This document shows positions 1,058 through 43,685 of a DNA stretch of 43,685 nt, one piece after another. The stretch comes from Octopus bimaculoides. Lineage: Eukaryota. Numbering within the stretch: position 1 is the stretch's first letter; each line of letters opens with the position of its first letter. Location of the stretch: positions 28,798 through 72,482 of the forward strand of contig NC_068990.1 of the NCBI RefSeq assembly GCF_001194135.2, read 5' to 3'. The notes below the pieces were generated by a model. That model did no database searches, was not told the DNA's origin, and saw only the letters and a list, made by a program, of their open reading frames with translations. Made by a program: the position numbers and the translations under genes.

Positions 1058-2993
1058 TTTCTGGTGCTCATGCTATATTTCTGTTAAGACAGCACTGATG
1101 CTACGTTTCTGGTAAGACAGCTGCAGGAGAAATACCTAGCCAAAGATAAACCTCTGTACCTGGCTTTCGTTGACATGGAGAAAGCCTTTGACAGGGTCCC
1201 CTGATCCCTTATCTGGTGGCTTATGAGGAAACTAGGGATAGATGAATGGTTAGTGAGAGCTGTGTGAGCCATGTACAGGGATGCTGTCAGTAAGGTGAGG
1301 GTTGGCAATGAGTACAGTGAAGAATTCCGGGTAGAAGTAGGGGTAGGGTCCACCAAGGAACAGTCCTCAGCCCCCACTTATTTATCATAGTCCTCAAGGC
1401 AATAACAGAGGAATTCAAGACAGGATGCCCCTGGGAGTTCCACTATGCTGATGACCTTGCTCTAATTGCTGAGTCCCTATCAGAACTAGAGGAGAAGTTC
1501 CAGGTGTGGAAGCAAGGTTTAGAATCGAAGGGCCTTAGAGTCAACCTAGCAAAAACCAAAATCCTAATAAGTAGGAAGGTAGACAAACCACAAATCCCTT
1601 CAGGTAGATGGCACTGCTCGATCTATAGAAAAGGCGTAGGTAGAAACTCTATAAGATGTACCCAGTGTAAGCTATGGACATATAAGTGGTGCAGCAATAT
1701 CAAAGGAAGGCTAACTAGGAAGATAGTTTTTGTATGTGGCAGATGCTCAGGAGCAATAAACACTGAAAATGTGCTGAGAACAACTTCTGCCACATTCCAG
1801 GGAGAAGATAGCTTCTGTTAACTAGGTGACCAAGTCAGTAGCGGGGGAGGGTGCACTAAAAGAGTAGCTGCTACAATAAGAATAGCCTCGGCAAAGTTCA
1901 GAGAGCTCTTACCTCTGCTGGTGACAAAGGGCCTCTTGCTCTGCGTAAAAGGCAGACTGTATGACACATGTCTCCGTACAACCATGCTACATGGCAGTGA
2001 AACATGGGCCGTGACTGCTGAGGACATGCGTAATCTCACAAGGAATGAAGCCAGTATGCTACGATGAATATGCAATGTCAGTGCACATACTCAACAGAGT
2101 GTAAGTACCTCGAGAGAAAAGTTGAACCTAAGAAGCATCAGTTGTGGTGTGCAAGAGAGATGATTGCGCTGGTATGGACATGTGGTGAGGATGGATGAGG
2201 ATAGCTATGTGAAAAAGTGCCACACCCTAACAGTTGAGGGAACCCGTGGAAGAGGTAGGCCCAGGAAGACCTGGGATCAGGTGGTGAAGCACGACCTTCA
2301 AACATTAGGCCTTACCTAGGCAATGACTAGTGACCGAGACCTTTGGAAATATGCTGTTTGTGAGAAGACCCAGCAAGACAAGTGAGACCATAACCCGTGG
2401 CTTTTACTAGGGGTGTAGCCAGCCCATTTATACATACCTTTCCTTATTTGGACACTAAACTCTGCTTGCGAAGACCTGTTGAGGCAATTGAAATTGAAAT
2501 CAAAATTGAACCAAATATGATGACTGGCACCCATGCGAGTGGAGCACTAACAGCACCATCCGAGCATGATTATTGCCAGAGCAACTGTCCAGCTTCCATG
2601 CTGGTGGCATGTAAAAAGCACCATTTGAGCATGTTCGTTACCAGCATCACCTTACTGACACTTGTACCGGTGACACATGAACAAAACATTCGAGCGAGGT
2701 CGTTGCCACTGCCCCTGGACTGGCTCCTGTGCAGGTAGCATGTAAAAAACACCATTTGAGTGTGGCTGTTGCCAGTACTGCCTGACTGGCCCTCAAGCCG
2801 GTGGCACGTAAAAGCACCCACTACACTCTCGGAGTAGTTGTCGTTAGGAAGGGCATCCACCTGTAGAAACTCTGCCAGATCAGATTGGAGCCTGGTGCAG
2901 CCATCTGGTTCACCAGTCCTCAGTCAAATCGTCCAACCCATGCTAGCATGGAAAGCGGATGTTAAACGATGATGATGATGATGAACTCTTTCC
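1058..2993 (+). mobile_element. RTE-clade LINE copy 1, 5'-truncated (second half of RT, PHD-like insert, 3' UTR, (GAT)n tail)
   Basis: LVRQLQEKYLAKDKPLYLAFVDMEKAFDRVP, GVHQG-like motif, YADD-type motif (~1444), GLRVNLAKTK, LRWYGHV-like region. 3' end catggaaagcggatgttaaacga(tga)n. Several stops and frameshifts. Confidence 0.95.
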
Positions 2994-3180
2994 AAATCCT
3001 CTGCACCATCCTCAGATTGACACCCAAACACTCTGAAATATTTGTATGGGAGCTTCCAGTGCAAATGCCAAGCAGTACAGCATGTTGTTTCCAAATTTCT
3101 GGCAGAGTAAATTGTGTCATGGTGCTGTTTTCCTCATAGATGGTGCCCAACTGACCCTACTATACTGCGTAATCGACAAA
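2994..3180 (-). mobile_element. N-terminal (HTH) part of the same DD37D transposase, separated by the RTE insertion
   Basis: ATG at 3120: MTQFTLPEIWKQHAVLLGICTGSSHTNISECLGVNLRMVQRIWKE, which continues naturally into ESNGDYEG at 1057. I could not identify this end's TIR. Confidence 0.8.
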
Positions 3181-4204
3181 AATCAAAAACAAAGAATGCA
3201 CAGAATGATTTCCCTTGTAGATGGTCACAAGACCATATATCACTCATGTGCTTTGTTTTCAGTTTTGGTATCTACAGCTCAATGCCATTCTTACCACCAA
3301 CCACATTGCAAAGTATACTGAATGCACTTCATCCTGGCACCAGCACTAGAGAGAGAGTGTCGTGACCTCAACAAGACTAAAAGTTGCTTGCAATCTTATG
3401 TTGTCTCCACTCAATCAGAACAGTATACTATTTGCATTTTATCATAGTACCAGCACTAGTGAGGTTAACTTGTAACAGATTGGCTAGAGAGTCCTCGTTA
3501 TAATCTAGGATGTGTTTCTATGCAAAAGATAACATCCAAGAAAGTGAGTGGAAGTGAAAGAGACAACAGAGAAATCAGGAAGGATAAGGGTAGGTTACAG
3601 GAGGAAGAGAGTCATGTCACAAGAGAGTGGCTTGTGGAAGAGGGAGAGATGACTAGCAGAACAGAAGGGGTGATGCTATGGATTATCAGGCAGGGTAAAG
3701 CATAAAGACACCCTTCAGTCACCCAGAAAGTTGCCCTCTGAGGCGTAAGTCTGAGCAAGGTTGTTTATGAAAGACCAGCAGTCATCCATGCAAACCAGCT
3801 TCCGTGCTCCATGCCACTGATGTGAAATGACGAAGGCCGATACAGCTTGGCACCAGTGACATCACAACTCATTTCTACATCTAAGTGAACTGGGGCAATG
3901 TGATGTGAAATAACGTACCTTTATCAGGCACTGCTTACTTTAATGACACTGACAGAATATTAGAGCAAATAGAGGAGAAACAGGGGACAACTGATGAGCA
4001 ATGGGAAATCGATAAATTTGGGAGGGGATGGTGGTGCAATGGGGAGATGGATCGTAGGGAGAGGAGATGAAATGGACATTAGGAAGATGGGGGGGATGCA
4101 GACAAGTACACAATGTGTAGGAGGCACAATAATGTACACATACAAACATGTACATACAAATACATACACACATCTACACATATCATGCTTCTTCTCAGCA
4201 CCCC

Positions 4205-4778: not shown

Positions 4779-7700
4779 CTGAAACATTTCAGTTAAAGAA
4801 TGGGAAAGGCATGAGAGCCGCATAACAATGCAGAATGAAGAGAAAAAATGTTTCAGTTAATCCAATATTTCAGCTTTAACAATGCCTAATTGTGAACTGA
4901 AAGATTCAAAGTGAAATGATAATAGTCTCTTTTACTGATAGACTTGACAGAGGAAAGTAAGGGTCTGAGAAAAGAAAAGATGGAGAAAAAAGTTGTTAAT
5001 GTTGTTATATAGCTGCAGGTTAGTCTTGATGAACCAGGCCAGTAACAAGCAGAGAGTTGGGTGAATGAGTAAGAGCAATCCTCAGGTCCAGTGCTCCAGA
5101 TATATGCAGACTCCATCTAACTGAAGATCACATTATGTGCTAATGTAGGCTACTGCGCAGCAGCCCTGGCAGATTAATTCTTTTTTATATCTCTGTATGA
5201 TAGCTGTTGGTAGTAGTGTTGTGTAATATTAAGTTAACTCTGACTGTATAAATCTGTGATATGTTACTAGTGAGTCCACTGACTCATTGTGAGCCATGGA
5301 TCCTTTGCTAAAGACATAACAGTCCTCCACTTAGTGGAGGACTGTATTCTACACTCTGCCATGTTCACCTTGTTCTTATATGTCTGGCAGTAAGGTGTAT
5401 ATGGGCACAGCACAACAGCTGCCATTCTGCTACATTTATTGTTGGTGCTGTGCATCCCAACACAATATTCAGTGATAATGCGGTTATTGATACTTCCATT
5501 ATTCCATTGTGTATATGTGTGCTCTTATCAAGTCAGTAGAAGAGTGATTGATATTAGGCTGGTGTTGCAGTCATGTTTCAGGCTGTTGTTAGACGTGTTT
5601 ACAGCTGAAAATGCATATGTGCTACCCTTCCATTCTGACTTGAGAGTTAAAAAACAGAGTAAAAGTTGAAAATAATCATTTGACCACGTTGAGTCTGCAT
5701 GGTAGAGAAGTAATCAAGAAGATAAGTTCCACTTTTAAGAAGGGATAATCTCTCTGAGTCCGCAGCACAACACTTCAATAAACAGGTGGGAAATAAACAA
5801 GAAACCAGTAGTAAAAGACTGAGGGACAAAAGAAGTGAGAGAATGAAGGACTAAAGGATTAACTCATTAGTAGTTAAGCTAGCCATATCAGGTCCAAATA
5901 TACTACTTGTTTTATGCTCAAACTGGTCAGGTCCAGCTTCTCACACCTACTCTACAATGTCATTTTTAGAATAAACAATCACATCAGTGAAATCTCAAAG
6001 CTACAAGATAAGCTATGATTAATTCAAAACAATTATATTCTGTCACACCGGCAGCCTGAGTTTTTGCTGTCTCATGGTGTGCCCTCCCTTCCCACCCCCA
6101 CCACTTGTACCCGAAGTTTCTATCCTCTGATCTCTATCAGATGTCTCTCCCATGAACACTTCTAAAGGCTTAATGCTCCCCCATCCCTACTTAGGGTTTA
6201 TCTCCTATGTAATATAATGATTATATAGCGCATAAAAATTATGGCGTAGTGTATGCAGGTTGAAAGCTATTGTATGTTCATGAGTTCTGCCAAATGCGAG
6301 CTTTCTTTTCAGGTACATGATGCTGCTGTCCCCCATCCCAGGGTCTCATGGGCCCACACTTTCCACACCCTCAGGGTTGGCACACTGAAAGGTAGGTCTG
6401 GTGAGATTGTTGAGTTGCTTGAATGGAGACGTGTAGATTTGTGCTGCATCCAAGAAGTAAGGTGGAGAGCAGGTTCCGCGAGGTTCCTCACAGGCAAAGA
6501 ACACAGGTACAATATTTTCTGGGCAGGGAACACTGACGGGGTCGGGGGCGTGGGTATACTTCTTGCAGAGAAATGAGTGGATAAGGTAATCGAGGAAGTC
6601 AGAGTCTGTGATAGAATACTTAAGATTAGATTAGTGTTGCAACATGGGTTAGCAACCATTATCTCGGCCTGTGCCCCTCAGCCAGGGCTACCTGATGAAC
6701 AGAAAAAATGATTTTATGACACCCTCATCGACAAATGACAGGGACCTTCTCTTTGTGACTGGTGACTTCAATGGGGGCTTCCATGGCATACATGGAGGCT
6801 ATGGTTTTGGTTCCTGCAATGAGGAGGGAACCAGGCTGCTGGAGTTCTGCAATGCAAATGATCTTGTGGTTTGCAATACTAACTTCAGGAAACCTGCCAG
6901 TCACCTATTCACTTACCGATCTGGTAGACACACTTGTCAAATTGACTACATCCTCACCAGCAAATGGGAAAGATGGCTACTTATAAATGCTAAAACCTTC
7001 CCAGGAGAAGAATGCACCCCACAACATAGGTTAGTAGTTAGCGACTTCAGGATCAAGGCTAAGTGGATACCCAGAAGTTGACCAGCATGGAGAAGAAGTG
7101 TCTGGAAGCTTAAGGATCCTGTGAATGGACAGAGATTTAGAGACGTATTACTCGAAGCTTTTGACGAAATAGAGGGGGATATAACATCACATGATGTGGA
7201 AGACAACTGGGGGTTTCTACAGGAAAACCTGCTGAGGGCTACTGACCAGGTCTGTGGATGGTGTAAAGTCCCTTCTCGACCCAAGGTAACATGGTAGTGG
7301 AACAATGTAGTTGACAGGGCCATTAGGGAAAAGAAACAGGCATGAAAGGACTGGAAGAATGGTGGTAGCAGAGAACTGTATCAGACTGCCAGAAGGGAAG
7401 CTAGGAGACAGGTTTATTTGGCCAGAAGGGAAGCAGATAAGAAAAAATTTGCCAATGTTCTGTATCGTGAGAACCAAAGACTTGAGGTGTTTCGTGTTGC
7501 AAGACAGTGTGTGAGAGAGAATCGTGAGAAAGAATAGGAGAGAAACGTGTCTGCATGGATGATGGTTCACTTGCATTTAATGAGGCTGCAAGGAGAGAGA
7601 CTTGGAGACGCCACTATGAAAGGTTGCTAAATGAAGAGAATCAGTGGGAGAAAGAGAGTCTGCTGAATGTCGACCCAACAAAGGGACCAGCTATCCAAAT

Positions 7701-7982
7701 TGACAGTACCTTAGTAGATAAAGCAATTAAGAGTATGAAGTCAGGGAAGGCCCCCAGCCTATCAGGACTCACCACAGAGATGCTCAAAATATCTGGCGAT
7801 GTTGGCTATAGTCTAGTCACCTGTATAGTCAATCAGGTGATACATGAAGGAGTCATACCCAATGAGTGGTGTAGCAGCACCATAGTCAACTGTTACAAAG
7901 GTAAAGGTGACGCTTTAGATACAAATAACTACAGAGGCATCAAGTTATTGGATCAGGTAATGAAAGTCATGGAGAGGGTCAT

Positions 7983-8866
7983 NNNNNNNNNNNNNNNNNN
8001 NNNNNNNNNNNNNNNNNNNNNNNNNNNNNNNNNNNNNNNNNNNNNNNNNNNNNNNNNNNNNNNNNNNNNNNNNNNNNNNNNNNNNNNNNNNNNNNNNNNN
8101 NNNNNNNNNNNNNNNNNNNNNNNNNNNNNNNNNNNNNNNNNNNNNNNNNNNNNNNNNNNNNNNNNNNNNNNNNNNNNNNNNNNNNNNNNNNNNNNNNNNN
8201 NNNNNNNNNNNNNNNNNNNNNNNNNNNNNNNNNNNNNNNNNNNNNNNNNNNNNNNNNNNNNNNNNNNNNNNNNNNNNNNNNNNNNNNNNNNNNNNNNNNN
8301 NNNNNNNNNNNNNNNNNNNNNNNNNNNNNNNNNNNNNNNNNNNNNNNNNNNNNNNNNNNNNNNNNNNNNNNNNNNNNNNNNNNNNNNNNNNNNNNNNNNN
8401 NNNNNNNNNNNNNNNNNNNNNNNNNNNNNNNNNNNNNNNNNNNNNNNNNNNNNNNNNNNNNNNNNNNNNNNNNNNNNNNNNNNNNNNNNNNNNNNNNNNN
8501 NNNNNNNNNNNNNNNNNNNNNNNNNNNNNNNNNNNNNNNNNNNNNNNNNNNNNNNNNNNNNNNNNNNNNNNNNNNNNNNNNNNNNNNNNNNNNNNNNNNN
8601 NNNNNNNNNNNNNNNNNNNNNNNNNNNNNNNNNNNNNNNNNNNNNNNNNNNNNNNNNNNNNNNNNNNNNNNNNNNNNNNNNNNNNNNNNNNNNNNNNNNN
8701 NNNNNNNNNNNNNNNNNNNNNNNNNNNNNNNNNNNNNNNNNNNNNNNNNNNNNNNNNNNNNNNNNNNNNNNNNNNNNNNNNNNNNNNNNNNNNNNNNNNN
8801 NNNNNNNNNNNNNNNNNNNNNNNNNNNNNNNNNNNNNNNNNNNNNNNNNNNNNNNNNNNNNNNNNN
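7983..8866. other. Assembly gap (N). Others at 23418-23899, 34181-34660, 35063-35072 and 35673-36100
   Basis: Runs of N. Confidence 1.
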
Positions 8867-9469
8867 CTCCTACCTCTGCTGGTAACAAAGCGCCTCTCGC
8901 TCAGAGTGAAAGGTAGACTGTATGATGCATGTGTGCAAACAGTCATGCTACATGACAGTGAAACATGGGCTGTGATTGCTAAAGACATGAGTAAGCTTGC
9001 AAGAAATGAAGCTAGTATGCTCCGCTGGATGTGTAATGTCAGTGTACATACACGACAGAGTATAAGTGCCCTGAGAGAAAAGTTGGACATAAGAAGCATC
9101 AGATGTGGTGTGCAAGAGAGACAAATGTGCTGGTATGGTCATGTGTTGCAAATGAATGAGGACAGCTGTGTGAAAAATGTGTCATACCCCAGCAGTTGAG
9201 GGAACCTGTGGAAGAGGTAGACCCAGGAAGACCTGGAATGAGGTGGTGAAGCACAACCTTCAAACATTGGGCCTCACCGAGACAATGACAGGTGACTGAG
9301 ACCTTTGGAGATGTGCTTGAGAAGACCCGGCAAGCCAAGTGAAACCATAACCATGGCCTGTGCCAGTGCAGCATAACCGGCCCATTTAAGGGTACCCTTC
9401 AATCATTGGGCAATAAACTGCGCTTGCGAAGACCTGTTGAGGCAAGTGAAATCGTTGTCATGGCCGATG

Positions 9470-9722
9470 GCCATACCGCCTGATTGGCACCTGTGACAGT
9501 GGCATGTTAAAAGCACCATTCGAGTGTGATCACTGCCAGTGCCACCTGACTGGCTCCTGTGCTGGTGGCACGTAAAAAACACCACTCTAATATGGCCGTT
9601 ACCAGTGCCGCCAGACTGGCTCCTGTGCCGGTGGCATGTAAAAAGCACCATTTGAGCATAGTTGATGCCAGTACCACCTGACTGGCCCTTGTGTCGGTGG
9701 CATGTAAAAAGCACCCACTACA
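9470..9722 (+). repeat. About four 66-bp tandem units in the RTE 3' UTR
   Basis: Unit ccacctgactggctcctgtgctggtggcacgtaaaaaacaccactctaatatggccgttaccagtg. Related arrays at ~2540-2820, 17530-17660, 23900-24050 and 28340-28520. Confidence 0.85.
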
Positions 9723-10179
9723 CTCTCGAAGTGGTTGGCATTAGGAAGAACATCCTGCTGTTGAAACTTTGCTAAATCAGATTGGAGACTGGTGCAGCCT
9801 TCTGGCTCGCCAGTCCTCACTCAAACCGTCCAACCCATGCCAGCATGGAAAGCGGACGTTACATGACAATGATGATGATGATGAGTGTAAACTGAATGCT
9901 AAATGGTTAAAAAAATCTCAGGAACTGAAAGATTAAGACAGAGGAACTCCAAAGCTGAAAATCTAAAGGACTGAAAAACTGAAAGATTGGAGGATTAAAA
10001 AACTAACGAACTGACAAATTTTTTAAAAAGAATTATGAAACTGAAGGACTGAAAACTGAAAGATTGAAAAAGAAAAGGAGACTTGAGAAATTGGAGAACT
10101 AAGGAACTGAAGAATTAAGAAAAAAACTAAGGAACAGGAAAATTGAAGACATGAAGAACTGAGGAAGTGAAAGACTCAC

Positions 10180-17524: not shown

Positions 17525-17830
17525 GACTTTCGAACGAGATCGTAGCCAGTGCCCCTGGACTGGCTCTTGTGCGGGTGGTACATGAAATACACCATTTTGA
17601 GCGTGGCCGTTGCCAGTACTGCCTGACTGGCCTTCGTGCCGGTGGCACGTAAAAGCACCCACTACACTCTCTGAGTGGTTGGCGTTAGGAAGGGCATCCA
17701 GCTGTAGAAACTCTGCCAAATCAGATTGGAGCCTGGTGTAGCCATCTGGTTTCACCAGTCCTCAGTCAAATCGTCCAACCCATGCTAGCATGGAAAATGG
17801 ACGTTAAATGATGATGATGATGATGATGAT
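17523..17830 (+). mobile_element. 5'-truncated RTE 3' UTR copy
   Basis: Matches the 3' end of copies 1 and 2 and ends in (GAT)n. Preceded by a poly-T run. ggactttc occurs at both junctions. Confidence 0.9.
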
Positions 17831-18473: not shown

Positions 18474-21400
18474 TCATCATCATCATCATCATCATCATCA
18501 TTTAACGTCCGCTTTCCATGCTGGCATAGGTTGCTCGGTTTGACTGAGGACTGGCAAGCCAGTAGGCTGCACCAGGCTCCAATCTGATCTGGTAGAGTTT
18601 CTACACCTGGATGCCTTTCCAAATGCCAACCATTCCAAAAGTGTAGCGGTTGCTTTTTACATGTCACCAGCATAGGAGCCAGTCAGGGGCCACTGGCATC
18701 GACCACGTCTTCTCAAGCACATTCTATCGCCCGATAATTCAAATGTAGTTTTAAAAGGGCTGGTTATGCAACACTGGCATTGACCGCAGCTGTGACCTCA
18801 CTTTACTTGCCAGATCTTCTCAAACAAGGCATATCTCCAAAGGTCTCAGTCTTTTGTAATTGACTCTCTGAGGCACAACATTCAAAGGTCGAGCTTCACC
18901 ACCTCATCCCATGTCTTCCTAGGTCTACCTCATCTACAGGTTTCTTCCACTCTTAGAATATGACACTCCTTCACACAGCCGTCGTCATCCATACACTACA
19001 TATGACCATACCAGTGCAGTCGTCTCTCTTGCACACCACATATGTTTCTTATGTCCAACTTTTCTCTCAGGGCACTTCCACTCTGTTATGTATGCACACT
19101 GACATTACACCTCCAGCAGAGCATACTAGATTCATTTCTTTCAAGCTTACGCATGTCCTCAGCAGCCATGGCCTATGTTTCACTGCCATGTAGCATGGCT
19201 GTTCGCACACAAGCATCATAATCTACCTTTCACTCTGAGTGAGAGGCCCTTTGTTACCAGCAGAGGTAGGCTCTCTGAACTTTGCCCAAGCTATTATTCT
19301 AGCAGCTATGCTCTCAGAGCATCCAGCCCCACTACAGACTTGGTCACCTAGGTAGCAGAAACTATCAACTACTTGTAGTTTTTCCCCTGGCATGTGATGG
19401 ACTCTGTTATCTGTACATCTATGGTGTTTATTGCCCCTGTGCATCTGCTACAAACAAAAACTGTCTTCCCAGTTAACCTTCCTCCAATATTGGTGCACCT
19501 CTTATGTGTCCATAGCTTACACTGGGTACATCGTATGAAGTTTACACCAATGCTTTTTTATACAAATCGAGCAGGGCCATCTACCTGAAAAGGTTTGTGA
19601 TTTGTCTTCCTTCCTACTTACTAGGACTCTGGTTTTTGCTAGGTTGACTCTAAGGCCCTTTGATTCTAGACCTTGCTTCCACACCTGAAATTTCTCCTCT
19701 AGTTCTGATAGTAACTCAGCTATTAGAGCAAGGTCACAGCATACAGGTATTCCGAGGGAAAGCTTGTCTTGAATTCTTCTGTTATTGCTTGGAGGATTAT
19801 GATGAATAAGAGGGGCCTGAGGACTGATCCTTGGTGGACCCTACCTCTACTTCTACCCGGAATTCTTCACTGTACTCATTGCCAACCCTCACCTTACTGA
19901 CAGCATCCCTGTACATGGCTTGCACAGCTCTCACTAACCATTCATCTATCCCCAGTTTCTTCATAGGCCACCAGATAAGGGGTCAGAGGACCCTGTCAAA
20001 GACTTTCTCCAAGTCAACGAAAGACAGGTACAGAGGTTTATCTTTGGCAAGGTATTTCTCCTGCAGCTGCCTTACCAGAAATATAGCATCAGTGGTGCTT
20101 TTCCCTGGCACAAACCCAAACTGCATCTCGTCTAGACTGACTCTCTCCCAAATTAGTTGGGCTATGACTCTCTCCATGACTCTCATCACCTGATCCAGCA
20201 ATTTGATACCCCTGTGGTTATTTCTATCTAAAGCATTACCTTTACTTTTGTATCAGTTGACTATGGTGCTGCTACACCAGTCATTGGGTAAGACTCCTTC
20301 ATGAACTACCTGATTTACAACACAGGTGACTAGACCATAACCCACACCACCAGATATTTTAAGCATCTCAGCAGTGATTCCTGATGGGCAAGGGGCTTTT
20401 CCTGACTTCATACCCTTAATTGCTTTATCTACCAGGGAGATGTCTATTCGGATACCTGGTCCCTCTACTGGGTCAACCTTTGGCAGATTCTCCTCCTCCC
20501 ATTCATTCTCCATGTTCAGCAGTCTTTCATAATGGCAACTCCAAGCCTCTTTCTTTGCAGAAGCATTAAATGCAAGTGAACCATCATCCATGCGGACACA
20601 TTTCTCTCCTATGACATCACAATTTTCTTTCACACAGTGTCTTGCAATCTGAAATACTTCAGTTCTTTGGCCCTTAAGTCGCTGAACATTGGCAAATTTC
20701 TTTTCTGCTTCTCCCTTTGCTATATATACCTGTCTCCTAGCTTTCCATCTGGCTATCTGATACAGTTCCCTGCTACCCCCACTTTTCCAGATTTTCCAGG
20801 ACTGTTCCTTTGCTCTATTGGCCCTGTCTACAGTATTGTTCCACCACTACATTACCCTAGATCTGGAAGGGACTATCCACCAGCCACAGACTTGATCTGT
20901 GGCACTCAGCAAGCTGTCTCACAGGAATTACCAGTTGCCCTCTATGTTACAAGTCTGTAGCTCCTTCTCCCTCTCATCAAATTTCTCAATGAGGATGTCC
21001 TTAAATCTCTGACCATGTGAAGAGTTCTTAAGCTTCCAAATCCCTTCTTTTCCAGATTTGGTCTCCTTCTTGGCATCCTTCTGGCCTTGAGTCTAAAGTC
21101 GCTGGCGGGTACATTCTTCACCGAGGAGGGTCTTTGTATTTAAGAGCAACCATGCATCTCACTGTCTGGTGAGAATGAAATCGATCTGGCTAGCAGAGTC
21201 ACCTGATTGATAGGTTATCAGGTGGTTGGCTGGCTTCCTGAAGTTGGTGTCGCAGATCAATAGGTTATTTGCATCACAGAACTCCAGTAGCCAAGTTCCC
21301 TCTTCATTTCGGGAACCATGTACACCATGGAAGATACCAGGTTGCCGTCCGACATGCCCATTAAAATCTCCAGCCACAAAGCTGAGATCATTGTCACTCA

Positions 21401-21860
21401 TCTTTGAGGCAGCTTGCAGAATATCAGAAAAGTGGTTCTTCTGTTCATTTGGTAGGCTCGCTTGTGGGGCGAAGGCAGAGATAATTGTAGCTAAACTATT
21501 CTGCAAGACTAGCCCGAGCTTAAGCACTCTATTGCACACCTTGACTACTTCTATGACCTTATCCGCCCATTTCTCTGTAAGAAGTACGCCCACACCACCT
21601 GCTCCATCACTGTTCCCTTCCCAGAAGATTTTATACCTATGGGCCTTGCCTGTGAGGCCCCTGGCTGAAACTCCTCTCCAGCTTCCCTCTTGTATACAGC
21701 ATACATCAATACATCAACACGCCTCCGTTCAAGTATCTCTACAAACTCGCTAGACCCACATTACAATGTGCCTACATTGACAGTGTCAACTCTGAAAACT
21801 GGAAAAGGGATGTGGGAGGAAAGATGGGAAGGAGGGATGGTATTCAGCACCTGAAAAGGT
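18474..21860 (-). mobile_element. RTE-clade LINE copy 3, near full length, same orientation as the host gene
   Basis: Minus-strand APE (VAGDFNGHVG, WLLEFCD, QIDFIL), RT (QFGFVPGKSTTDAIF, FVDLEKVFDRV) and PHD-like insert. The (GAT)n tail reads as (TCA)n at 18474-18501. Confidence 0.95.
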
Positions 21861-23292: not shown

Positions 23293-23327
<35 letters not shown>

Positions 23328-24183
23328 GTTTAACGTCCGCTTTCCATGCTAGCATGGGTTGGACGATTTGACTGGGGACTGGTGAAACCAGATGGCAACA
23401 CCAGGCTCCAATCTGATNNNNNNNNNNNNNNNNNNNNNNNNNNNNNNNNNNNNNNNNNNNNNNNNNNNNNNNNNNNNNNNNNNNNNNNNNNNNNNNNNNN
23501 NNNNNNNNNNNNNNNNNNNNNNNNNNNNNNNNNNNNNNNNNNNNNNNNNNNNNNNNNNNNNNNNNNNNNNNNNNNNNNNNNNNNNNNNNNNNNNNNNNNN
23601 NNNNNNNNNNNNNNNNNNNNNNNNNNNNNNNNNNNNNNNNNNNNNNNNNNNNNNNNNNNNNNNNNNNNNNNNNNNNNNNNNNNNNNNNNNNNNNNNNNNN
23701 NNNNNNNNNNNNNNNNNNNNNNNNNNNNNNNNNNNNNNNNNNNNNNNNNNNNNNNNNNNNNNNNNNNNNNNNNNNNNNNNNNNNNNNNNNNNNNNNNNNN
23801 NNNNNNNNNNNNNNNNNNNNNNNNNNNNNNNNNNNNNNNNNNNNNNNNNNNNNNNNNNNNNNNNNNNNNNNNNNNNNNNNNNNNNNNNNNNNNNNNNNNG
23901 GCGGTACTGGCAATGGCCACGCTCAAAATGGTGTATTTTATGTGCCACCCGCACAAGAGCCAGTCCATGGGCACTGGTAACGATCTCGCTCGAAAATCCT
24001 TACACGTGTCACGAGCACAAGTGCCAGAAAGGCAACGCTGGGCACAGGTGCTATCCCGATTTCGCATTCGCTTGCCTCAACAAGTCTTCACAAGCGAAGT
24101 TTAGTGCCCAATGTAGGAAAGGTACGCATAAGTGGGCTGGCTACACCCCTGGCAGAGGCCTTGGATTTAGGTCTCACTTGGCT

Positions 24184-24184
<1 letters not shown>
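23293..24184 (-). mobile_element. 5'-truncated RTE copy (entire 3' UTR, gap at 23418-23899)
   Basis: (TCA)n + gtttaacgtccgctttccatgctagc at the left. The right end stops at the ORF2 terminus sequence (aagccaagtgagacc on the minus strand). Flanked by (TA)n and (CT)n(TA)n. Confidence 0.9.
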
Positions 24185-28170: not shown

Positions 28171-28172
<2 letters not shown>

Positions 28173-28531
28173 CATCATCATCATCGTTTAACGTCCGCTT
28201 TCCATGCTAGCATGGGTTGGACGATTTGACTGAGGACTGGTGAAACCAGAAGGCTGCATCAGGCTCCAATCTGATTTGGCAGAGTTTCTACAGGTGGATG
28301 CCCTTCCTAACGCCAACCACTCAGAGAGTGTAGTGGGTGCTTTTACGTGCCACCGGCACGAGGGCCAGTCAGGCAGTACTGGCAACGGCCACGCTCAAAA
28401 TGGTGTATTTTATGTGCCACCCGCACAAGAGCCAGTCCAGGGGCACTGGCAACGATCTCACTCGAAAGTCCTTACACATGCCATGGGCACAAGTGCCAGA
28501 AAGGCGACGCTGGGCACAGGTGCCATCCCGA
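28171..28531 (-). mobile_element. 5'-truncated RTE 3' UTR copy
   Basis: Very similar by eye to 17523-17830 (inverted) and 43486-43685. (TA)n on both sides. Confidence 0.9.
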
Positions 28532-31367: not shown

Positions 31368-33850
31368 GCAATGTGCGATGAAATCCAAGAAGCTTTAAAT
31401 GCTAACAATTCCAAACTTTTTTACTCTCTCTTAAATAAAGTTTATGGACCAGCTTCATCAACAGTTGCACCACTTCAGAGCAAGGATGGCACAGAATTAT
31501 TACCAAATCCTAAAGATATTGTTGGGAGATGGAAAGAGCATTTTGATGAGTTGTTCAATAGATCTACTGAAGTTGACCTCTCTTATCCTGATAATATACC
31601 TGAGAGACCAACAAAACGTCTTTTAGCAGAGGTTCCAAACCTGGCTGAAATAAAATCAGCAGTCAGGAAATTGAGCAATGGAAAGGCCCTTGGTATGGAT
31701 GAATTAGGTGCAGAGAGATATAAATATGGTGGTGATCATCTCTGTATAATGTTGACAGATGTGATTCAGAAAGTTTAGCATAGTGAAGAGGTTCCTCCGC
31801 ATTGGCAAGAAGCAACTATTCTTTCATTTTATTTGTTTCAGTCATGTGACTCCAGCCATGCTGGAGCACTGCCTTTAGTCAAACAAATTGACCCCAGGAC
31901 TTATTCTTTGTAAACCTAGTACTTATTCTATCAGTCTCTTTTGCTGAACCACTAAGTTATGGGGATGTAAACACACCAACATCGGTTGTCAAGTGATGGG
32001 AAGGGACAAACACAGACACACAAACACACACACACACACACATGTATTCACGACGGGCTTCTTTCAGTTTCTGTCTATTAAATCCATTCACAAGGCTTTG
32101 GTTTGCCTGAGGCTATATTAGAAGACACTTGCCCAAGGTACCACACAGTGGAACTGAACCTGGAACCATGTGGTTGGTAAGCAAGCTACTTACCACACAG
32201 CCACTCCTGTGCCTATGGAGATACTATATAAATCGAAAGGTGGAAAGGATGTCTGTGATAATTATCATGGCATCTGTCTGTTAGTTGTTGCTGGAAAGGT
32301 CCTTTATAGGGTAATGCTGGACAGATTGCTGATGAGATTCTACCAGAATCACAATGTGGGTTTAGGGATAGTAGAAGTACTATGGATATGATATTTTCAG
32401 CTAGTCAGTTGCACGAGAAGTGCATCGAACAGGATGTGGACTTATGTCAGGTTTTCATTGATCTAATGAAAGCGTTTGATTCTGTCAATAGAATTGCACT
32501 TTAGAAGATCCTGAAAAAGTTAGTATGTCCTGAAAAGTTTGTGAGAATGCTTAGACAGATGGAGGTGAGAGTTAATGTTGGAGGTACCTTATCAGATCCA
32601 ATTTCTGTAGAAAATGGTGTAAAACAAGGTGATATTCTTGCTCCAATATTGTTTGCTATGTCTTTCAAATAGCTTTTGAAGATTGCATTGAAGGGGTCTA
32701 TATAAGATACAGGACAGCGGGAAAACTGTTCAATCTCAAAAGACTCTATGCCAAAACAAAAGTTCTGCATTCTCACCTCATTGAGTTCCTGTATGCATAT
32801 GATTGTGACTTGTTGGCACATTCCGAGAAAGATGTGCAGCACTTGTTGAATGTAATTTCTGAAGCATGTGCAGCATTGGGTCTAACGATCACTCTGAAAA
32901 AAACTGCTCTTCACAAGATGTGGAACTTTTTATAACTATGAATGGTCAAAGGTTGGAGACTGTGTCAAGATTTATTTATTTAGGAAGTACCTTGAGCACA
33001 GCTGGTCTTGATGATGAAATTTCATATAGAATCAGCAGGGCGAGTAGTGCTTTTGGTAGGCTTGATAGGACACAACAATATATCTCATAAATTAAAGTTA
33101 AGATATATAACATGTGCATCCTACCATTTTTGTTATATGGAAGTGAGGCATGGGTTATTTATCACAGGCATGTAAAGCAACTGGAATGATACCATCAATG
33201 CTGTCTGAGAAAAATCTGGTGGATAAACTGGAAAATGGCCATTAGTAATGTGAAGGTGTTTGAGAGGAGTTGCAGTAGAAGTATAGAGTCAATGATTCTA
33301 CAAAGACGTCTGAGGCAGGGTGGGGTGAGCATCTGATAAGGTTGGGTGATGAGAGACTGCCCAAGCAGCTATTGTATGATGAGCTGGAAGACGGCAGGAG
33401 ACCACTGCATAAGCCTAAACTAATGTTTAAGGATTGCCTTAAAAATGCTCTAATACAGACAGGAATTGCAGTTCGTGATTGGGAGAGGGAGGTACAAGAC
33501 CGGAATGGGTGGAGAAAGACAGTGCATAGTGGTTGTTAGGGGTCTGAGAGGGAGAGAGTGAAGTATGGGAAAATTAAGAGGGGGCTTAGAGGGAGGGAAT
33601 CTGTGAAGAGTGAGGGAGTGTTGCTTTTTGTGTGTGGTTTGTGGGAAGAGGTATTTGAGCTGTGCAAGCATCGAAAATCTAACAGGAATCAACCCATAAT
33701 AAACAGTGATGTAGCTATTACAATTCACAACAGAACATGTGGAAAATGTGGAAGAGGGCGCCTCTCAGTTGGAGGTCTGAAACACATGTTAAGAGAGTGC
33801 ATGCGGTGGCACCTATTTCTCCTGCCAGCCAGCATAGCTGTGCATCTATA
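31368..33850 (+). mobile_element. Second RTE-clade LINE family (BovB-like), 5'-truncated, decayed, interrupted by a SINE
   Basis: GRWKEHFDELFN, LSNGKALGMD, DNYHGICLL, FIDLMKAFDS, GVKQGDILAP, RFIYLGS, ERLPKQLLY, and a C-terminal C2H2 remnant CGKCGRG.LSVGGLK. No PHD insert. Confidence 0.9.
31820..32216 (-). mobile_element. tRNA-derived SINE (family A) inserted in the BovB-like RTE
   Basis: Minus strand has A box TGGCTGTGTGG, B box GGTTCAGTTCC and an internal (GT)n. CTAT at both junctions. Removing it restores EAT-MEILYKSKG. Confidence 0.85.
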
Positions 33851-43485: not shown

Positions 43486-43685
43486 TCATCATCATCATCA
43501 TCGTTTAACGTCCGCTTTCCATGCTAGCATGGGTTGGACGATTTGACTGAGGACTGGTGAAACCGGATGGCAACACCAGGCTCCAATCTAATTTGGCAGA
43601 GTTTCTACAGCTGGATGCCCTTCCTAACGCCAACCACTCAGAGAGTGTAGTGGGTGCTTTTACGTGTCACCCGCACGAAAACGGC
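43486..43685 (-). mobile_element. RTE 3' end, running off the right edge of the window
   Basis: (CAT)n + cgtttaacgtccgctttccatgctagcatgggttggacg, matching the other copies. Confidence 0.9.

Follow-up and report, generated by a model that had tools for sequence, protein, structure and literature searches.

The 43,685-nucleotide stretch of Octopus bimaculoides DNA analysed here (contig NC_068990.1, positions 28,798 to 72,482; hereafter the window) contains decayed copies of a long interspersed nuclear element (LINE) whose reverse transcriptase (RT) has an insert rich in Cys between its motifs 6 and 7. This insert is almost certainly a conserved, functional PHD finger of the LINE family. The family constitutes a large lineage of LINEs with a single open reading frame (ORF), an APE-type (EEP) endonuclease and an RTE-like architecture, and both profile and fold comparisons place its finger nearest to that of the Wnt co-activator Pygopus (Pygo). 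Decayed transposable elements abound across the window, and the PHD-bearing family is represented by three copies:

1090..2984, plus strand: LINE copy 1, 5'-truncated and decayed, with the C-terminal half of the RT, a 3' untranslated region (UTR) of about 600 bp and the tail

6367..9881, plus strand: LINE copy 2, with the endonuclease and N-terminal RT, an assembly gap, then the thumb, 3' UTR and tail

18483..21832, minus strand: LINE copy 3, nearly full-length but decayed, with the EEP endonuclease, the RT with the PHD finger, 3' UTR and tail

Copy 1 shares 82% DNA identity with copy 3 over 1090–2386. By tblastn, it corresponds to residues 657–1082 of full-length homologues, and copy 3 to residues ~56–1082 of the homologues P0126 and P0142. 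The RT/PHD part of copy 2 falls within a gap of 883 N (7984–8866), similar in size to the missing 300 codons, leaving its finger unreadable; the readable fingers of the window are those of copies 1 and 3. Stops and frameshifts are distributed along the whole ORF of the window copies, all of which are dead.

The frame-1 translation of 1102–2400 on the plus strand of copy 1 reads ...GLRVNLAKTKILISRKVDKPQIPSGRWHCSIYRKGVGRNSIRCTQCKLWTYKWCSNIKGRLTRKIVFVCGRCSGAINTENVLRTTSATFQGEDSFC*LGDQV... (the asterisk marks a stop), with the stretch from the catalytic motif onwards running FHYADDLALIA...GLRVNLAKTKILISRKVDKPQIPSGRWHCSIYRKGVGRNSIRCTQCKLWTYKWCSNIKGRLTRKIVFVCGRCSGAINTE...GEDSFC*LGDQV. The landmarks of this translation, and the finger of copy 3, are as follows:

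1444..1455, plus strand: RT motif 5, the catalytic YADD, FHYADDLALIA in the frame-1 translation

1531..1560, plus strand: RT motif 6, GLRVNLAKTK, with G, V, N and K invariant in alignment A1 of the family (described below)

1609..1746, plus strand: PHD-finger remnant of copy 1, with six of the eight ligands; C2 and the His are both changed to Tyr

1807..1830, plus strand: RT motif 7 remnant DSFC*LGD, in which a stop replaces Tyr; a short deletion lies upstream

2239..2274, plus strand: C-terminal GTRGRGRPRKTW motif, family consensus RGRPRKTW

19441..19579, minus strand: PHD finger of copy 3, with eight of the eight ligands once a single 1-bp insertion in an A-run is corrected

An original prediction, made from the letters of the window, had located the Cys-rich insert between RT motifs 6 and 7 at 1609–1746. 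These bounds are exact, the Trp lying at 1609–1611 and the last Cys at 1744–1746, and the translation agrees. The prediction had further ascribed the two Tyr residues of copy 1 to single-base changes, and DNA alignment with copy 3 shows them to be TGT to TAT at C2 and CAT to TAT at the His. The same alignment reveals a single extra A in the A-run of copy 3; read across this frameshift, its finger is WPCSICIKK-IGVNFIRCTQCKLWTHKRCTNIGGRLTGKTVFVCSRC and retains all eight ligands, as had been proposed. The family consensus of motif 7 is FCYLGD, of which F, Y, L, G and D are invariant. The BovB-like element that had been put forward as an in-window control with a short linker indeed joins motif 6 (GLTITLKKT) to motif 7 (FIYLG) through only ~25 residues. 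It also has a RRPLHKPKLMFKD stretch, related to the C-terminal motif and in the same place.

The repaired insert of copy 3 scores 29.7 bits (E 6.4e-7) against the Pfam PHD model PF00628, above the cut-off of 24 bits. Six intact relatives score 23.7–33.7 bits, five of them passing and P0126 (23.7 bits) falling just short, and the insert of copy 1 is below the cut-off at 15.7 bits because two of its ligands are lost. The ligands are arranged in the order C4HC3, with the spacing C-x2-C-x10-C-x2-C-x4-H-x2-C-x13-15-C-x2-C. The aromatic core residue, two positions ahead of C7, is Phe or Tyr in 66/66, 91/93 and 111/111 sequences. An AlphaFold2 model of a 694-residue member, computed with a 66-sequence alignment, has a mean predicted local distance difference test (pLDDT) score of 84.5, with the finger at 91–95, and in Foldseek the complete model matches human L1 ORF2p and R2 proteins (E 1e-23 to 1e-20). 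For the finger modelled by itself (pLDDT 79), Foldseek returned almost solely PHD fingers, led by those of Pygo (2vpd, 2vpe and 2dx8; probability 0.98–1.00, TM 0.55–0.65, with E values of 0.01 or worse, as expected for ~50 residues). The non-PHD entries among the 50 matches shown are one FYVE domain (rank 26) and one RIM2 finger (rank 38). The PHD identity, which the ligand pattern had originally suggested, is thus returned by both the profile and the structure prediction, in preference to a RING.

The RT of repaired copy 3, used as a query, identified 1426 proteins at E ≤ 1e-5. Among the best 120 of these, most are already tagged in databases with PF00078 and PF00628, the full ligand pattern is kept in 110, and the distance from motif 6 to motif 7, where both could be located, is mostly 87–90 residues (range 84–94). 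PF27108 is also listed for some of the database relatives. Alignment A1 comprises 66 homologues with 37–83% identity to the reference, mostly ~45–60%. Its invariant columns include all eight ligands, the catalytic Asp pair of YADD (D369 and D370) and FxYLGD, and the other two YADD residues, Y367 and A368, are at least 90% conserved. Selection was gauged by column conservation in place of dN/dS, because dead copies decay neutrally and relatives that are ~45% identical are saturated at synonymous sites. Column conservation is 0.69 for the finger (0.63 without the ligands), compared with 0.65 for the thumb, 0.77 for the palm, 0.48 and 0.51 for the flanking linkers and 0.46 for the C-terminus; the non-ligand positions of the finger are about as conserved as the RT thumb.

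A profile spanning motif 6, the finger and motif 7, searched against 1.84 billion cluster representatives (50% identity), gave 1681 matches at E ≤ 1e-10 and 98 at E ≤ 1e-30. A second search, with the divergent GC-rich query P0316, yielded 118 ORFs that reach 900 residues or more, most of them located on contigs of 3.3–4.5 kb. The canonical finger is present in 111 of the 118, located 53–57 residues past YADD (55 in 100 of the 111), and six more carry a finger with longer His–Cys spacing, bringing the total to 117/118. The insert is therefore not evolving neutrally, given the invariant ligands in A1, a column conservation similar to that of the thumb and its presence in 117/118 ORFs; the finger is an old, selected and fixed trait of the LINE family. 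The sub-lineage with longer spacing (P0270, P0466, P0476, P0477, P0483, P0494 and P0495) has WVHGKKKC or WVHVNGKC, compared with WVHKKC, in an otherwise intact finger.

Named hosts of the family are the molluscs O. bimaculoides, O. vulgaris and Mercenaria mercenaria, and the cnidarian Hydractinia symbiolongicarpus. Five members (P0005, P0085, P0447, P0465 and P0177) are deposited under bacterial metagenome-assembled genomes (Herbaspirillum, Candidatus Thiodiazotropha ex Lucinoma, Terriglobia and Burkholderiales), which are most likely mis-binned host or other eukaryotic DNA. More than 100 distinct intact ORFs (~1000–1100 aa) lie on contigs of ~3.3–4.5 kb, about the length of one element. Such contigs have the look of assembled transcripts or of elements assembled in isolation from environmental samples, and suggest that many members are now active.

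The family profile aligns with L1 ORF2p through motif 6 (GYKINVQKS) and stops ~20 residues on, where L1 reads ELPFTIASKRI-KYLG and the family SGK[YWF]PCGVC; the finger segment of the whole-family profile matches Pygo fingers separately. From this stop in the profile alignment, the finger is read as an insertion between RT motifs 6 and 7 relative to L1 and R2. In R2, motif 6a of the RT contacts or wedges into upstream target DNA (PMC11204384; 10.1101/2024.11.11.623112; PMC12247875). Judged by motif order alone, the finger would occupy the equivalent position. Motif 6a resembles the finger in being extra sequence past RT motif 6 that is specific to elements without long terminal repeats (non-LTR elements), but it is a loop without a zinc finger.

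Searched against the PDB, the family profile matches the Pygo2 and Pygo1 PHD fingers best (E 6e-8), and the next matches are nearly all histone H3-tail readers, mostly of K4me3: KDM5B PHD3, PHF23, PHF2, PHF13, ALFIN-like, TAF3 and BPTF. The structural basis of H3 recognition by Pygo1 has been described: W366, Y341 and D352 form the K4me2 pocket's walls and V350 and A356 its floor, I357 holds T3, and E360 helps to anchor A1 and R2; binding is lost in the W366E, V350E and A356E mutants and in mutants of I357 and E360 (Fiedler et al. 2008, PMC2726290). Mapping of these residues onto the LINE family by hidden Markov model alignment gives the following counterparts:

Pygo1 Y341: an aromatic residue (Y/W/F422, at C1-2) before Pro-Cys, in 57/66 and 83/93 sequences and in 97/111 full-length ORFs

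Pygo1 V350: V431, in 57/66

Pygo1 A356: S/A435, in 64/66

Pygo1 I357: I436, in 65/66

Pygo1 W366: W444, two residues before the His, where the Trp of H3K4-methyl readers divides the K4 pocket from the A1 pocket, in 65/66 and 88/93 sequences and in 108/111 full-length ORFs

Pygo1 D352: no counterpart, the position falling in a two-residue loop segment missing from the family

Pygo1 E360: S/T/G/N, not conserved

Five of the seven pocket residues are conserved, including both aromatic walls, and the two acidic contacts, which in Pygo anchor H3 A1/R2 and the K4 amine, are not. The counterparts of V350, A356 and I357 cover the floor and the strand pairing with H3 R2–K4. The aromatic residue at C1-2 is followed by a near-invariant Pro, the pair aligning with Pygo1 Y341-P342, and the segment D-P-x-[FY]-x-C-P-R-C before the last Cys pair resembles the K4me3 readers KDM5B PHD3 and DATF1/DIDO. 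An ING-type methyl-lysine cage had been predicted. The two aromatic residues on which that proposal relied, one before C1 (57/66) and the Trp before the His (65/66), are conserved, but the ING-like geometry does not hold: the arrangement is that of Pygo ([YWF]-P-C, with the aromatic at C1-2), compared with a Tyr at C1-1 in ING. The residue pattern supports a putative reader of histone tails; its pocket is half-aromatic, and the methyl state it would prefer is unpredictable.

The LINE finger shares with the Pygopus PHD (PDB entries 2VPE, 2VPG, 2DX8 and 4UP0) its position as top match by profile and by fold (TM ~0.6), the [Y]-P-C-G-[VI]-C start, the W-x-H motif and the counterparts of Y341, V350, A356, I357 and W366. 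It differs in a D352 loop that is two residues shorter, a shorter C6–C7 loop and the lack of E360.

We propose that the finger may read the N-terminal tail of H3, probably methylated at K4, through its Pygopus-like half-aromatic pocket. Because the finger sits at the position of motif 6a, which touches DNA in R2, it could hold the endonuclease/RT on the nucleosome beside the nick, and target-primed reverse transcription in marked chromatin would then be biased or stabilised by binding of the H3 tail. That the ligand is the H3 tail and that it acts in targeting has, in our estimate, slightly less than an even chance. The fuller proposal, of a LINE lineage with an H3K4-methyl reader in the catalytic domain of its RT, at a loop facing the target DNA and coupling nicking and target-primed reverse transcription to the mark, is put forward more tentatively.

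Several observations weigh against this proposal. D352 and E360 of Pygo1, the two acidic contacts, lack equivalents in the family. Pygo needs its cofactor BCL9 HD1, bound to the back face of the finger, to shape the A1 pocket (PMC2726290); whereas Pygopus is a co-activator working with a BCL9-type cofactor, the LINE finger resides in an enzyme for which no such partner is known. A nucleic-acid contact would suit the conserved basic residues K447, K/R448, R/K455 and R466 equally well. The equivalence to motif 6a, finally, derives from motif order and not from superposition.

The strongest alternative, which we consider somewhat unlikely, is that the RT uses the finger as a zinc module, structural or nucleic-acid-binding, to elaborate the 6a loop, with no part played by histones. 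Such a module would grip target DNA, primer or template RNA, perhaps replacing the CCHC knuckle of L1, R2 and CR1. It would account for an insertion at a position whose R2 counterpart touches target DNA, for the conserved Lys and Arg residues after the His and flanking the last Cys pair, and for the family consensus having no other Cys-rich motif past the thumb. The rise in finger pLDDT from 79 in isolation to 91–95 within the RT suggests packing on the RT, and the Foldseek matches include some structures of PHD or extended-PHD modules together with DNA (6asb, 5xfp/5xfq). However, this alternative leaves unexplained the conservation of the Pygo K4me pocket, in which both walls, the Val and Ser/Ala floor and the Ile for T3 are kept, and readers of histone tails make up almost all of its nearest relatives in sequence and fold. 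The Trp before the His is not known to be required for the PHD fold and is absent from K4me0 readers such as BHC80 and AIRE, and its retention in the LINE finger is counted against a nucleic-acid or scaffold role for that reason.

Other peptides whose N-terminus is free or resembles that of H3 can also be ligands of PHD fingers. The LINE finger might accordingly bind a non-histone protein, either a host factor or one of the element's own, and serve in ribonucleoprotein assembly, nuclear import or regulation. The Pygo finger works only with a partner on its back face, and the lack of counterparts to E360 and D352 suggests a ligand unlike the canonical H3 tail. We nevertheless regard a non-histone ligand as improbable: no candidate partner is known, and the conserved face of the finger is that corresponding to the H3K4 face, not to the HD1-binding face (the latter viewed without detail).

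It is very improbable that the insert lacks a present function and survives as the neutral relic of an exon captured from a host. The two copies that can be read in the window are broken, but these copies are dead throughout, whereas intact relatives show invariant ligands, conserved columns and a fixed length, with the finger kept in 117/118 ORFs, and the relic was rejected on these grounds. A RING, or another cross-brace finger with E3 ligase activity, can in effect be dismissed: the Pfam matches to RING (zf-RING_2 15.4 bits and zf-RING_16 16.8 bits, with cut-offs of ~27), C1 and B-box models are all sub-threshold, PHD scores of 23.7–33.7 bits exceed the 15–17 bits of RING, the ligand order is C4HC3 and not C3HC4, and the 50 Foldseek matches shown are nearly all PHD.

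Full-length members are organized as Exo_endo_phos, RVT_1 and PHD, followed by ~230 residues comprising motif 7, the thumb and the C-terminal RGRPRKTW; the three domains are all found in four full-length relatives of 1024–1096 aa. Past the thumb, the family consensus contains no Cys/His cluster or CCHC knuckle and ends RGRPRKTW...DR..WR. The RT segments are nearer to the in-window BovB-like element (27–40% identity) than to L1 or R2 (15–19%), and others have placed in the RTE clade an octopus element comparable in size and in UTR length (PMC9115989). Assignment of the family to the RTE clade is suggested by architecture and 3' tail and not by phylogeny. Canonical RTE and BovB elements share with the family the single ORF, the APE-type endonuclease and RT, the lack of a CCHC knuckle, a basic C-terminal motif of the R-G-R-P-R-K-x-W type, a simple-repeat 3' tail and 5' truncation. 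They differ, as does the in-window element, in having a motif 6–7 linker of ~25 residues and no zinc finger.

In addition to the three copies, at least four more 5'-truncated tail fragments of the PHD-bearing LINE are present in the window. These and the remaining features are as follows:

2968..2984, plus strand: 3' tail of copy 1, (GAT)n

17526–17826 (plus strand), 28171–28513 (minus strand), 43486–43674 (minus strand), 23311–23417 (minus strand) and 23900–24184 (minus strand): short 5'-truncated 3'-UTR copies with the common 3' end and (GAT)n

31530..33315, plus strand: second RTE/BovB-like LINE remnant, without the insert, identified by weak tblastn matches (26–40% identity)

The terminal sequence ...GCATGGAAA..GGA.GTTA.A, varying at single bases, precedes a (GAT)n of variable length in all seven copies and fragments compared (7/7). 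The common 3' terminus can be written ...GCATGGAAAGCGGACGTTAAA(C/T), then (GAT)n, and the start points differ. A common 3' end with variable (GAT)n and 5' truncation is the pattern left by target-primed reverse transcription. The short 3'-UTR copies, some of which adjoin (AT)n microsatellites, could alternatively be members of a short interspersed nuclear element family borrowing the LINE tail. Within the ~600-bp 3' UTR there is a direct repeat of ~78 bp (2599–2676 and 2730–2807, 73% identity in copy 1); copy 2 matches this repeat several times, with overlaps, at 9482–9715, which suggests a variable tandem array in the LINE 3' UTR. Copy 1 is nested in a decayed DNA transposon of the Tc1/mariner type, which occupies 150–1085 and 2985–3330 of the window on the minus strand. 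The minus-strand translation of one flank (...QQDSAPCHTSRGIESWLSDN...WPLNSPDCNPLDHYVWGAVE...) is like the C-terminus of a DDE transposase, and the other flank is N-terminal-like.

PHD domains were already known in LINEs. As the original prediction stated, they occur in ORF1 of CR1/L2 elements; they are also found at the N-terminus of a single ORF in these elements, and have been proposed, without functional tests, to target the host genome during integration; the same study terms ORF2 structure 'highly constrained' and credits the first description of the PHD in CR1 elements to an earlier paper (PMC4120745, Metcalfe & Casane 2014). The CR1/L2 domain is, like the finger described here, a PHD finger in a non-LTR retrotransposon for which genome targeting has been suggested. 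However, its place is ORF1 or a position upstream of the endonuclease, and subgroups have gained and lost it ('domain shuffling'), whereas the finger of the present family is inside the RT fold, fixed in position and length, and kept by essentially every member. The earlier CR1 paper is reportedly that of Kapitonov and Jurka in 2003. Chromodomain integrases are the accepted example of chromatin-guided integration. Those of chromoviruses (PMC3605345) resemble the proposed arrangement in that a reader of histone marks is fused to the enzyme that inserts a retroelement; they differ in that the enzyme is an integrase and not an RT, the reader is a chromodomain directed to H3K9me heterochromatin, and it forms a C-terminal appendage and not an insertion in the catalytic domain.

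No description of an RT-internal PHD in RTE-type elements was found in the full-text literature, a scope that leaves Repbase/Dfam notes and subscription journals outside, and the word PHD is absent from a bivalve LINE survey of 2023 with lengthy coverage of RTE. The RVT_1 + PHD architecture is visible in databases through automatic tags and is undiscussed as far as the literature was searched. With the LINE-borne PHD itself already known, the new point is a finger that is fixed, RT-internal and Pygo-like. The octopus brain element RTE-2_OV (1109 aa, UTRs of ~600 nt) has been drawn with a 'C2H2 zinc finger' termed rare in RTE (PMC9115989). This feature may be the PHD of the present family; RTE-2_OV and the family were compared by size and UTR length, in which they are similar.

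Molluscs and cnidarians harbour the family in abundance, with numerous intact ORFs, and RTE elements are transcribed in the octopus brain, so that experimental systems exist. The determinants of L1 insertion sites include the endonuclease consensus and the replication-fork context. For LINEs that are not site-specific, a reader fixed in the RT, beside the expected place of the target DNA, would offer a testable route from chromatin state to the choice of insertion site. If the proposal is true, the enzyme would be the first chromatin-reading RT, a parallel among non-LTR elements to the chromodomain integrases of chromoviruses. Should its role be to grip nucleic acid, the finger would still be a new solution for a class of elements that lacks the usual zinc knuckle. 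The LINE RT core, usually called highly constrained, would be shown to accept a whole folded domain, which bears on the engineering of non-LTR proteins for targeted insertion: the loop between motifs 6 and 7 would be a natural site at which to graft targeting modules for non-LTR gene insertion.

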